Under the pieces are notes generated by a model, which saw only the letters and a list, made by a program, of their open reading frames with translations, had not been told where the DNA came from and searched no databases. The position numbers were made by a program, and so were the translations under genes. A stretch of DNA of 44,129 nucleotides from Paraphysomonas bandaiensis (lineage: Eukaryota > Protista > Chrysophyceae): assembly GCA_965644295.1 (NCBI GenBank), contig CBFFRP010000100.1, positions 1 to 44,129 of the forward strand. The letters run 5' to 3'. This document shows, piece after piece, positions 33,983-42,014 of the stretch; position 1 is the first letter of the stretch, and every line of letters begins with the position of its first letter.

Positions 33983-36200
33983 TGGTAGCGAGCGAGGAGG
34001 AGAGAAGGAGGATAGAGGAGTAGTGCCACAGTTTAATGAGAGCAATGTTGAACAATGGATTGAAGACTTCGAAACGTTCCTCATGAGGAAAGAGCAAAGT
34101 GAAGTAGCTGTGGAGCCACCACCGAAGGAGAGCGACTTCGGGGAACAGCCACTCACGTTAATGGAGGAGAAGTCTTACAGACAGGCTGTGAAGAAGTACT
34201 GGAAGGCGAATGCCATAGCGTATTCGTACTGCAGAGAGGCAGTGCAATCATCTTCGAAGGCGCTTCAGAAATTCCATCTTCTACATAAAGGGTTCAAGGC
34301 TGATGGAAGTGGAAGCAACAGGTTTAAGGCGCATATTATGATTGATGAGTTGAAGAAGTGCTTTGCTGGAGGAAAGCAAAACAAGATCAGTGAGCTGTTG
34401 ACTCAGTATGGCTCTTTCCGTATGCGTCCGGAGGAGACTGCGAAGGACTATATAATACGGTTTGAAATACTGCTGAAAGAGCTACAGGAGCAGCAGCAGG
34501 ACATATCGGAGCTCTCAAAAATAACACGGTTACGAGAAGGTCTGTTGAATGAAGAATATGCTCCTCTGAATGTTGCTTTGTATTTGATGCCTGATGATGT
34601 TGATTATGCAACATTATCAAGGAAGATAGAACGGTATGATGATACCATTCCTGGAAGGATTGCGTTAGAGCGGAAACGCAAGAAGGTGGAGGAGCTGAAC
34701 TTCATTGAAAAGAGCAAACGGTCTCGAACGGAACGGGATAAGCGTAAGAAGGGCAACTGTAGATATTGCAGGAAAGAAGGAATTCCTCATAGCCATTCAA
34801 CTGAACAGTGCAGGAGGAAGCAGAGGAAGAAGGATGGAGAGATATCAGGGCAGCGTCCTGGAAGTGCTGAATACACGGGATGCAGAAATTGCAAGTCTCT
34901 GGAACATCTTGCTGCTGATTGTCCAACGACGAAGAAAAAGCATTCTAGAAGAGGAGAGAAAGGGAAGAATCATGGTAGGAAGCCGGACAAAAGGCTGCTG
35001 ACAGTAGAGAATATACGGCGTGGAGAACCAGCAGATTTCTCTGATGAAGATGAAGCTAATATGATCGAGGATGTTATGAAATTGTCATGCAATATACATG
35101 AAACGAATATATGTAGTGTAAATGATGACATGCATTATACATATATTGACACCTGCTGTTCATCATCAATGTTCTTGATGAATGATGTGACCATGCTTGA
35201 CACTCATATGAATACATCAAAGGTGATAAACGGATCTAAGAAGGGATCAGAGATTCATATCACAAGTGTGGGTTCCCGTGGAGCATGGAGAGACATAGAA
35301 ATTTCAGATCAGATCAATCGATGCCTGTGCTCCGGACGTAAGCTGAACGAAATGGGCTATCGATTCACGGTGTGGTATGGGATCCAAATTTATGACTGTA
35401 ATACCGGTGAGCTGGTACTGGAGGGACCCATGAAGAATGGAATGACTGCAGTTCCAACTCAGCAGCTGTTGGAGCTTCCAGATGTGTCTACACCGAGTAA
35501 TTGTGAAGTAAATCTTAGCGATAGGACTGGTGAGGACGAGCTGGAGTTGCTGCATCGGAGAGCGGGTCACTTCAACAAACATGCTTTAGTAGAGGCACAT
35601 AAGAGGATGCTCATCATGGGTACAGGGTTGAAACGGAAACACCTCACAGCCAAGGTACACAAAAATCAGTGTTTGTGTGATGTGTGTGCCAGGTCTAAGA
35701 TAACCCGAGTCAGCTTCCGAACGAAGGACGAGAATTCCGTTAGACCGAATTTTTCAGCAGATATCGCTGTGTACTTAAATTGTCCTGCTAGAGGAGGTGA
35801 GAGGTATGTGTTAAAGATAACGCATCATGCCAGCAAAATGTTCTGGGCGACGGGTTTAGTCCACAGAACTGGGGAAGCGGTCTTAGAAGTCTTCAAAGAG
35901 CTATTTAGAGGAGATGTTAGAAGGTACAAGCTCAAGATGGAGCACTATCATGCAGATGGTGCAAGAGAGTTAATCAGTGAAGAGCTGCGTCAGTATCTTA
36001 GGACACAAGAGTGCTATCAACATACGTGGAGCTCAACAGACTCTCCAGAAATGAATGCCATAGAGGAGAGGAAGTTCAGAACTGCTGGAGAGATGACTCT
36101 TGCAATGCTAATCCAATCTGGACTGCCACCGCAATTTTGGCTGGATGCATACATGGCAGCCAGATATATTTTGATTCGATTGCCAACGAAAACAGATAAA
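33966..36200 (+). CDS. Copia polyprotein part 1: Gag with Zn knuckles, protease, integrase
   Basis: CRNCKSLEHLAADC, YIDTCCS, LHRRAGH...CDVC, ADIA, ADGARE and EERKFR. Cut at RLPTKTDK by element A. Confidence 0.93.
33983..33993 (+). promoter_or_regulatory. Primer-binding site (TGGTAGCGAGC), tRNA-iMet-like
   Basis: TGG follows the LTR-terminal CA immediately. It resembles TGGTA(G/T)CAGAGC; the tRNA identity is inferred. Confidence 0.7.
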
Positions 36201-36505
36201 AAGTTGATGTGATGAACAAACCTGGAGAAGCGCTCTAAACCTGGTGAAATTTTGAAAATGTCGATTTAAGTTGTGTTTTTTATATGTTTTGCAATAAGTA
36301 ATGTAGTAGGTGTAAAGAGAACATGTTTTTGGAGACATTTAATAAGTTTTATATTAGTTACAGGTCCAAAAAGTGAGAATGTAACGGTTAATGTAACGGT
36401 TAATACATGCATACTATAGATAGCACTATTATATATATTACAAAGTGCTATCTATACTTACAAGCGATAATCAACTGAACTTCTGGTACGTTTACCAGTA
36501 ATAAT

Positions 36506-38245
36506 TAGACTAAACCATAGTCTGTAACCATAGTCTGTAACCAATGATATAAAGTGGAATTATTACAACACTGAGCAAAGCAATCACGGTACCCCTCTAT
36601 TCTATAGTTTCCTTAGATAGAGTATCAGCATGTGTGTACAGTTCGCTAGCTAACGCGTTACAGAAACTATAATAATCAATACTATTTGTATCTATCGAAC
36701 GAATATTACAATACGCATGGAATGTATTTTGCAGAACACAGCCGAACGCAAACGAGCTAAACTTTCCTCTTTCGCCTAGATGCCCTCCACCACCATGCCG
36801 ATGAGGCCATATCCTCTCTTTAATCTGTAAATTGAATACATCACATGCTGCAAACATCTTACCATAGTCGGAGCACACAGGCACAGAATTGGTGGTAGAC
36901 CTCGTAGGTGATCTATGATAAGCATTGGACAAGGCGGTATATTTCTTGCCATCCTTCGTATAAGAATGAACTATGAGTTCTTTACGCTGTTGATTCCACA
37001 GTCCATTCCACTGTCCTCGTATATTGACACCTTCACGAACTTTACGAGTGAGTGCTTGGAAGCGCTGTGGATTCACAGCCCCGATATATTTTACTTTCTT
37101 CCTTGCAAGTCCCTCTCGTGCAGCTTCATCAAGATAATACGAGTCGAATACAAGAACAGTGCTACTCATTCGTGTAGAATTAAAAGAGTGTATGATTTTG
37201 CCCCAGTGTTCCACTACAGCGCTGACAGGTATAGACTCTCCTAGATCAGCTATTGCATCATGCAACCACATGTCCAGCATATATGCGTGTTTATTGGAGA
37301 GCTTCACACACAACTCATACACCCACAAGCCCATTCGTTCAGGCTTCATATAAACTACTCTTATATTAGGACTATAGCCTATAAATCACTTGTTAATAAT
37401 AGTATTCAATTGATCAATATACACACCTGAGAAATGCAGCAACTTCTCATCGCCAGCTACAACATTGCCAATACCACGTAAAATAGATCTAAAATTATGA
37501 GACAACTGCTTTGAATATCGACTATCAAATAAAAAGTTCGTTGTCACAATTTCCATGAATCGTATGCCCAGAGAATCAATCCTTGGATAACAATCCTTAA
37601 AGTGGTCTCGGTACCATATAAGTTGCTCACGCAATGGTCGCGAATGACGTATTACACCTCTTGGGGCATGTTGTTCTCCATAAATTCGAATCCAAATTGC
37701 AAGAAGCTTATATATAGAACACAATGAAAGCAAAATTACCGATCCACAGTCATATGTCAAGTCGGCAGGGTCAATATCCTGGGCTATTTTCGTCACAAGG
37801 GATACTGTAACAAAACGCAAGAATATCTTGAGGAAGCTGGCAGTGCGAAAATTAAACGTAGGGTATCGATCTGCATCAACCGTATGAGGCAGATGGAATG
37901 ACTCATTGGCCGAATCAACTGGTCTCCAACGCCCAATGATCTCTATTTCCTGAGCACGCTCTGAGCTTCTTGTCGCGTCATCTTCATCGTTGCAAAGAGA
38001 ACCTGATTTGCGCTTTCGAAATGCCATGTCAAACTATGAGTGAATGGGGGATACAATGAACTTACCAGCACATTAATTTGACCTGCAATTCGCTGACTCA
38101 ACACTGTGATATGAAGTGTGAAGTGTGGTTCACATTGTCTGATTTCGACTGATTTTATGACAGTTATTTTATGTATGAAAATCGACGTTATTTTCAGTTT
38201 TTTTTCAATTTTTTTCAGTATGGTTGCAGACTATGGTTTAATCTA
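36506..38245 (-). mobile_element. TIR DNA transposon B (1740 bp), TAG...CTA, 3-bp TSD AAT, nested in A
   Basis: 27-bp TIR TAGA(C/T)TAAACCATAGTCTG(T/C)AACCATA. AAT at 36503-36505 and 38246-38248. Excision restores the A cargo ORF. Confidence 0.9.
36597..38027 (-). CDS. piggyBac-like (PGBD/DDE_Tnp_1_7-type) DDD transposase, 460 aa, one intron
   Basis: Exons 38027-37427 and 37378-36597 with a 48-nt GT-AG intron. Motifs VAGDEKLLHFSG...MKPERMGLW, VLVFDSYY, YIGAVN and YGKMFAACDVFN. No C-terminal Cys-rich domain. Confidence 0.85.
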
Positions 38246-39114
38246 AATAGAAGCAGAATCAACTGCACCTGTGTCTACCCACTCCTTAGTGGGTTCCTGG
38301 ATATATCTCCACCTCGGAATATTGTCTCTTTTACTGGAGGGAATATTATGAGGCTTATCCTGGTGGGCTATATTCAATATTAGGTACAGTACACAAACAA
38401 GCATATATATAAAGTATACCAGATGCAAGCGAGAAGTATTTGGAGCGCACTGACTTATCCTCCCTGGTGGCACCACATCTCTTCTTGCTTTTGTAAACAA
38501 GATGATAGGTACCATCATCATTGACAGCATGGACAATACCACGCATCCTAGTCACAGTAACAATTTCGTCCCCAGGAGAATACGTGATAGAGGGGTTACC
38601 ATCGTCATCAGACGATGATGACTCCACCTCTTGTCCTGATATTGTACAGATATAAACATGGCATAATAATATAATATCTACAACACAATAACATACCAGA
38701 TTGATTACTATCGTCTGAGTCATTGACGATTATATCACCACAATCCCAGCCTTCCTCCCTCCTCCTGGCATCAAGCCTCGCCTTCTTTGCACGTGCTTCT
38801 TTTCTTTCAACATTTGTCTTCTTCCTCGCCGCACGCTGCTCTTCTCTGCCGGGGTACACATTGGGCAAGACTCCGACCATATCGGTGGGTGTAGAACCAT
38901 CACAATTCCGGACGACAACTCGTGGGGGTATCTTCCTTGCGCCGTAGTTGCTGAAGCAACTGATGTGGTTGCTAATGCTGCTACAGCAGACGGAAACGGT
39001 GACGTGGCCGCCGTAGATTACCTATCTACATTCGTTGCACTCTTCAAATCTTCGTCAGAGTCACTCTCTGTTACGTTAGCAGGGTGTGAGCAATGTTTTG
39101 TTCACAAACCATTT

Positions 39115-41530: not shown

Positions 41531-42014
41531 AAGCAACCTTAAGACAAACGTGGGAAAAATTTTTTCCCACGTTTTGGACCCTTTGTACCTCATCCTATAC
41601 TTATGGTTTTCATTAAACTAGTGTTATTATAACAGTGTAATAATATTATATAGTGGCTACGAAACTATTTTAAGTGCTTGAATTTTGTAACAAATGAATA
41701 GGAGATTTCAATAGAATTATTGGTATAGTAGTAAATTATAGTTATAAGCACCTTACAATAATAACTATTCTTGTGTCTGTAAGAATCGTAGACGGCGTAT
41801 TTCTTGGGCCTGTCTACTGTTAGTTGCAATTAATTCCGAATCACGTTCATACATATATTTTATTAAAATATCATATTATTATTATGAAAACTTCTTGCAA
41901 ACTACTCGAATAACACTTCGGGACAAATCAACATTAAAAATACTCGTAGAATATAGCTTTCAATCAAAAGTCCCAAATTTCAACATTTGTCCCACGTTTG
42001 TCTTAAGGTTGCTT
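41531..42014. mobile_element. MITE C (484 bp), AAG...CTT, 3-bp TSD ATG
   Basis: 30-bp TIR AAGCAACCTTAAGACAAACGTGGGA(A/C)AAAT. ATG at 41528-41530 and 42015-42017. AT-rich non-coding interior. Excision gives FKH-AEFQHDDFKIP in frame. Confidence 0.95.

Follow-up and report, generated by a model that had tools for sequence, protein, structure and literature searches.

A transposon superfamily is usually recognised by the length of its target duplication, by its terminal nucleotides and by its domain composition. In piggyBac, a widely used gene-delivery tool, function, including footprint-free excision, is held to depend on the TTAA target, the CCC termini and the Cys-rich domain. What, then, is an element whose transposase looks like that of piggyBac but which begins with TAG, ends with CTA and is flanked by AAT? 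Such an element lies in a contig of the chrysophyte Paraphysomonas bandaiensis (CBFFRP010000100.1, positions 1 to 44,129; the window, meaning the whole 44,129-nucleotide stretch that was analysed). Our analysis makes it very probable that this is an autonomous, probably still active cut-and-paste transposon, encoding a two-exon DDD transposase of 460 amino acids (D193, D279, D380) from a large and compact clade distantly related to piggyBac.

Boundaries, copies and target sites

The cut-and-paste transposon measures 1740 bp and has 27-bp inverted ends, TAG...CTA, whose two arms are identical at 25 of 27 positions (TAGAYTAAACCATAGTCTGYAACCATA). Its parts, in window coordinates, are:

36506-38245: whole autonomous 1740-bp element, transposase gene on the minus strand; same boundaries in seven full-length copies
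36503-36505: left target site duplication, AAT (flank comparison and empty sites)
38246-38248: right target site duplication, AAT (flank comparison, RNA joint and empty sites)
36506-36532: terminal inverted repeat (TIR) on the 3' side of the gene, beginning TAG; 25/27 match to the other arm
38219-38245: TIR 5' of the gene, last bases CTA; 25/27 match to the other arm
36513-36538, plus strand: two tandem 13-nt subterminal repeats, AACCATAGTCTGT (direct and inverted repeat detection)
37148-37521: segment absent from a 1363-bp non-autonomous derivative (copy comparison; transcript joint 37145->37521)

A reading of this DNA made from the sequence alone (the sequence-only reading) had proposed these TIRs and had taken the AAT on both flanks to be a 3-bp duplication. 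Both proposals held. Nine empty paralogous copies of the interrupted repeat read unbroken ...ccagtaat AAT agaagcag..., with one AAT each, and at the insertion site contigs of polyA RNA skip exactly 1743 bases, with three letters common to the two sides of the joint. Because the empty sites in DNA and RNA contigs alike hold a single AAT, the insertion amounts to 1740 + 3 bp. The same reading had noted that removing the element plus 3 bp restores the frame of the interrupted gene; this follows arithmetically, since 1743 = 3 x 581 and the host reading frame is kept. The empty paralogs may be sites that were never occupied or sites from which an element was precisely excised. At least 40 places in the genome match the host repeat (window about 36200-36505 and 38246-38450). 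The nine near-identical matches are empty at this point, and the host unit contains a 52-nt GT..AG intron seen in RNA contigs (38368-38419, minus strand).

The genome that was searched for copies comprises 62.5 Mb in 669 contigs. It contains seven full-length copies at 97-100% identity (mean 98.9%), with 100% identity over all 1740 bases in three; six of the seven keep open exons and the remaining one is broken. There are also at least ten two-ended copies of the 1363-bp deletion derivative, with the same ends and with 3-bp duplications. The 37148-37521 deletion has removed D193, the intron and part of the FDSYY motif from this derivative, which, having no catalytic core, is amplified in trans.

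How constant is the 3-bp duplication? Identical 3-bp flanks were found in 16 of 17 two-ended copies, whereas a chance match of this length is expected in about 2% of copies; a 2-bp match occurs once, matches of 4-7 bp do not occur, and one copy has a damaged end. The 16 duplicated triplets comprise nine sequences: AAT six times, ATT three times, and AGC, ACA, TGT, ACT, TTT, GTT and GTG once each. The genome-wide tabulation of flanks that the sequence-only reading had suggested as a check thus gave variable 3-bp duplications and no 4-bp or TTAA ones. Its claim of a 3-bp stagger free of any TTAA requirement stands (16 copies, two further subfamilies, three relatives), but the target is not random. 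The consensus is a palindrome, T-A-W-T-A (T in 10, A in 12, W in 12, T in 13 and A in 12 of the 16 sites), the middle three bases of which are the duplicated ones. A palindromic preference of this kind fits a symmetric dimer on the target.

The opposite end of the element carries one 13-nt repeat of the AACCATAGTCTGT type and one degenerate repeat, and AACCA-type subterminal repeats also occur in both other subfamilies of this genome and in a relative from another sample (L062, see below). These repeats are likely binding sites of the transposase. The TAACCATAG motif is not enriched elsewhere within the window. A separate 484-bp MITE-like element, at window 41531-42014, has 33-nt inverted ends of the form AAG...CTT, unlike the TAG...CTA of the piggyBac-like element.

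The transposase gene and its product

Read on the minus strand, the transposase gene is divided between open stretches that encode 213 and 250 amino acids. Its features are:

37427-38027, minus strand: exon 1, with the ATG at 38027 and the GDEK motif containing D193 (D codon 37451-37449); from the open reading frame and motif positions
37379-37426, minus strand: 48-nt intron, GT..AG, in phase, with one in-frame TGA; from polyA RNA contigs
36597-37378, minus strand: exon 2, with the stop codon; from the open reading frame, motif positions and family conservation
36597-37378, motifs within exon 2, minus strand: KPERMG (37346-37329), FDSYY with D279 (codon 37145-37143), ACDVFN with D380 (codon 36842-36840), WPHRHGG and LQNTF
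38013-38065, minus strand: second splice, 53 nt, GTAAGT..AAG, by which the start codon is removed; from a joint in RNA contigs

The 48-nt intron is skipped exactly in two polyA metatranscriptome contigs (676 nt and 645 nt long), which differ by 0-2 other letters and whose shorter arms beyond the joint measure 255 and 238 nt. Intronless relatives have no residues at this position. The intron is real on both counts, and the joined exons total 1383 nt and give 460 codons free of internal stops. The intact spliced protein anticipated by the sequence-only reading is thereby borne out, as are the motifs it had listed, GDEK, FDSYY, ACDVFN and KPxxxG, which correspond to D193, D279, D380 and KPERMG. 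The 53-nt splice joint has just 24 nt on its shorter side, and all genomic copies keep the segment; its product may be a non-productive or regulatory isoform. DNA deletion as the source of these two RNA joints was rejected after comparison of the genomic copies.

Spliced polyA transcripts of the gene come from at least two marine studies. Transcripts of the deletion derivative, about 93% identical and carrying the joint 37145->37521, are present alongside the full-length transcript in the same metatranscriptomes. Identical copies, open frames, spliced polyA transcripts and an amplified core-less derivative that has the ends and the 3-bp duplications together make it probable that the element is active, which had earlier been raised as a possibility, and transposition is probably recent or ongoing.

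What kind of transposase is it? The two exons were searched separately. Neither piece matched PF13843 (DDE_Tnp_1_7), the piggyBac family of Pfam; DDE_Tnp_1 alone appeared, below threshold, and phmmer of the exon pieces against the PDB gave nothing relevant. Since the exon pieces fall under the Pfam thresholds, kinship to piggyBac rests on the profiles of relatives and on structure. A HMMER search with exon 2, run exhaustively, retrieved 608 representative clusters (50% identity) at E<=0.001, 332 of them at E<=1e-10. The full-length relatives among the matches listed are mostly of 445-485 amino acids, and the match reaches to a few residues from the end of the protein. In 60 relatives PF13843 was the only recurrent Pfam family (16 of the 60 at E<=0.01, best E 7e-7; above the 22.4-bit cut-off in three of ten relatives, at 23-29 bits), the one other match being to DDE_Tnp_1; NCBIfam models gave noise-level hits to IS701 and IS1634 only, and none to IS1380. 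The PF13843 model run against the genome matched nothing, a weakly informative result in that control genomes were equally without match.

A profile built from the family had a single match in the PDB, the Trichoplusia ni piggyBac transposase (6x67), at E 0.007-0.02. The alignment places GDEKLxxFxG...KPxxxG on DEQLLGFRG...KPSKYG, with the first Asp on the catalytic D268, and in two family alignments the conservation of D279 (DSYY) and D380 (CDxFN) is complete or no lower than 90%. D193, D279 and D380 are the predicted DDD catalytic triad, and their spacing of 86 and 101 residues is like the 78 and 101 of D268, D346 and D447 in piggyBac. Taken alone, the sequence evidence for kinship is weak. 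Database homologs are all unnamed or labelled 'hypothetical protein'; the one exception, a 'Spirulina sp.' record from a contig of 1.9 kb, is probably contamination.

Structure speaks more clearly. An AlphaFold (AF2) model of a relative, P0002, which is 38% identical to exon 2, has a pLDDT of 93.6 and a pTM of 0.91. Over 360 residues (model 56-460, chain 117-517) it matches piggyBac 6x67 with a Z score of 27.8 and an rmsd of 3.8. Lower scores were obtained for piggyBat (9c0f, 24.7), Tn5 (about 17.8) and the truncated Tn5 inhibitor protein (13.9), and all else scored below 8. Foldseek also matched the model to piggyBac (E 4e-11), and in the ESM Atlas every one of the nearest clusters belongs to PF13843. 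The model of this relative argues strongly for a piggyBac fold, with the N-terminal domain, the RNase H-like core and the insertion domain. The piggyBac kinship seen by the sequence-only reading therefore finds support in relatives' profiles and in structure; the window's own exon pieces do not supply it.

The C-terminal Cys-rich domain is absent. PF13842, which describes it, matched none of the 60 relatives; the structural match of the P0002 model ends at piggyBac residue 517, ahead of the domain; family proteins mostly stop about 10-25 residues past the last conserved helix; and the last 60 residues of the 460-aa transposase hold only three Cys and two His.

Relatives with TAG or TGG ends

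Matches to the family profile number at least 100 in this genome. Are the unusual ends and stagger confined to the window element? Five further groups or members show both:

Subfamily 2, same genome, three copies without DNA similarity to the window element: 1726 bp, ends TAGGGCTAACC...GGTTAACCCTA (TAGGG..CCCTA), duplications ATT, AAA and AAT
Subfamily 3, same genome: 1742 bp, TGG...CCA, duplication AAT
L062, other sample: 1743 bp, TAG..CTA, duplication GTA
L063/L064, other sample: 1773 bp, TGG..CCA, duplication ATG
L082, other sample: TGG..CCA, duplication AAG, read by eye from the flanks

TAG or TGG ends with a 3-bp stagger are a family trait. A clean 3-bp duplication was not found in three metagenome relatives with TIRs (L066/L067, L083 and L084), and a simple TIR scan of three loci of the same genome (L038, L039 and L047) gave nothing convincing. 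Family members typically lie on contigs of 1.7-2.0 kb, which is the size of the element itself. L066 (38-1822) and L067 (732-2516) hold the same member, which encodes a 553-aa protein and has the apparent ends TGAAGTCAACC..GGTTAACTTCA, in different flanks; in both contigs it is nevertheless preceded by AAG and followed by ATG.

Relatives of the P0073 cluster (for instance L061, 5001-7220) are longer, at 739-749 amino acids with an N-terminal extension of about 300. They adjoin genes with weak IQ and WW domain matches, have no recognisable TIRs, and may be domesticated or a larger variant.

Place among known transposons and possible mechanism

The element is not a canonical piggyBac, since the TTAA or 4-bp duplication, the CC(C)...(G)GG termini and the Cys-rich domain were each looked for and none was found. 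Has its clade been described under another heading? A survey of 157 piggyBac-like elements reports the TTAA target, with rare 4-bp variants only, and TIRs whose first C is conserved (PMC5381638), and a 2023 review gives 4-bp duplications and CC..GG termini as common to piggyBac and IS1380 (PMC10045372). One study describes the Cys-rich domain as essential for piggyBac transposition (PMC5861402). The largest mining study retained only elements with this domain and a TTAACC motif (PMC13461360) and, having required both, would have discarded the present clade. A full-text search of a literature collection for piggyBac with 3-bp duplications found no paper linking the two. Only one possible prior sighting of the family came up: Maumus et al. 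2009 (PMC2806351) mention, from two diatoms, an uncharacterised element 'weakly related to piggyBac'. Prior description, for example among piggyBac-class diatom families in Repbase or Dfam, would leave the biology unchanged and take away the novelty; the diatom element speaks for it, but the published duplications, the selection rules of the mining study, the empty literature search and the 'hypothetical protein' names of the database homologs make it rather unlikely.

The clade is large, without a name in protein databases and apparently uncharacterised. We regard it as a sister lineage related to piggyBac, whose mechanism is probably that of piggyBac with another stagger. We tentatively go further, giving slightly less than even weight to an undescribed sister clade of superfamily rank, widespread in marine protists and defined by a DDD transposase of about 460 amino acids, the lack of a Cys-rich domain and a 3-bp stagger at a loose TAWTA.

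Likeness to the piggyBac superfamily (IFP2, piggyBat and PGBD; PF13843) extends from the modelled fold over the N-terminal, catalytic and insertion domains to the triad spacing, the block DE-x-L-x-F-x-G...KP-x-x-x-G, and the plan of short TIRs, subterminal repeats and a single gene. The differences are a variable 3-bp duplication in place of TTAA, TAG/TGG..CTA/CCA termini in place of CCC..GGG, 460 amino acids without the Cys-rich domain against 594 with it, and sequence similarity near or under the Pfam threshold. IS1380 is a distant prokaryotic DDE/DDD relative in the IS4-like group; unlike the present element it has 4-bp duplications and CC..GG termini (PMC10045372), and no NCBIfam IS1380 model matched the 60 relatives. 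Tn5/IS50 of the IS4 family is the second-best structural match, about 10 Z units under piggyBac. It differs in its 9-bp duplications, in a DDE triad with a YREK signature and in being bacterial. Its transposase, too, carries a beta-strand domain inserted into an RNase H-like core, and it forms a hairpin on the transposon end.

Could the gene be a passenger, or domesticated, in an element moved in trans by some other transposase that makes 3-bp duplications, such as a Sola-like one with AAG...CTT ends? An element with AAG..CTT ends does coexist in the window (the 484-bp one at 41531-42014). The transposon, however, consists of nothing other than gene and ends, in 1.73-1.77 kb, and this gene-plus-TIR unit with 3-bp duplications recurs in other samples and in subfamilies without DNA similarity. 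It begins with TAG or TGG, not with the AAG of Sola-like elements, and the subterminal repeats vary by subfamily, which is what one would predict if every transposase recognised sites of its own. Mobilisation by a foreign enzyme is thus very improbable.

Membership of another superfamily is more improbable still. A 3-bp duplication is typical of PIF/Harbinger, Zator/ISAzo13, Academ and CACTA, Harbinger even prefers TWA targets, and the sequence-only reading had noted an association of TAG ends with Academ. Against this, the 60 relatives gave only DDE_Tnp_1_7 and one DDE_Tnp_1 in Pfam and noise in NCBIfam, and the modelled fold matches piggyBac far above any other transposase. PIF/Harbinger and Zator have unrelated transposases (DDE_Tnp_4 and ISAzo13-like), with no match found here, and PIF/Harbinger needs a second, Myb-like gene, whereas the 1.74-kb element has a single 460-aa gene and no Myb-like second ORF. 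Academ elements make 3-4-bp duplications and encode a large transposase that includes an XPG-nuclease or helicase region; no such Pfam domains were found in the present family. A canonical piggyBac with a misread or decayed TTAA duplication is hardly credible as an explanation and can be set aside, A/T-rich targets notwithstanding, with matching 4-bp flanks in 0 of 17 copies against 3-bp flanks in 16, empty sites that differ by exactly 1743 bases, and TAG..CTA termini instead of CCC..GGG.

How might a transposase of the piggyBac-related lineage work? Lacking a Cys-rich domain, it would bind subterminal repeats of the AACCATAG type, cut at the TAG/CTA termini and join the ends to the target with a 3-bp stagger at the preferred palindrome T-A-W-T-A, whose central three bases would be duplicated. 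One candidate for end recognition is a short basic N-terminal helix together with a hairpin (the 'GW' region). By analogy with piggyBac and Tn5, the 3' ends would be nicked and hairpins formed on the transposon ends before the staggered insertion. In this scheme we infer catalysis by the 460-aa protein, the binding sites, the hairpin step and seamless excision alike. If a hairpin of the piggyBac type is used, each flank would be left with a 3-nt overhang. The duplications being direct repeats, these overhangs would be complementary to each other regardless of sequence, so that repair could in principle be seamless without a palindromic TTAA.

If the sister-clade reading is true and the hairpin has been kept, excision could be seamless at any 3-bp duplication, and the family would be a natural piggyBac-like system free of TTAA. 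The clade keeps the piggyBac fold but departs from piggyBac in duplication, termini and Cys-rich domain together. It raises the questions of what fixes the distance between the two active sites on target DNA, and of what reads the ends in place of a zinc finger. A small, possibly seamless transposase with no TTAA requirement would also be of interest to genome engineers.

A minor observation concerns the host: its genome carries at least seven silicon-transporter (PF03842) genes, for example at C348 (104740-105963), C406 (324812-326035) and C398 (55702-56922).
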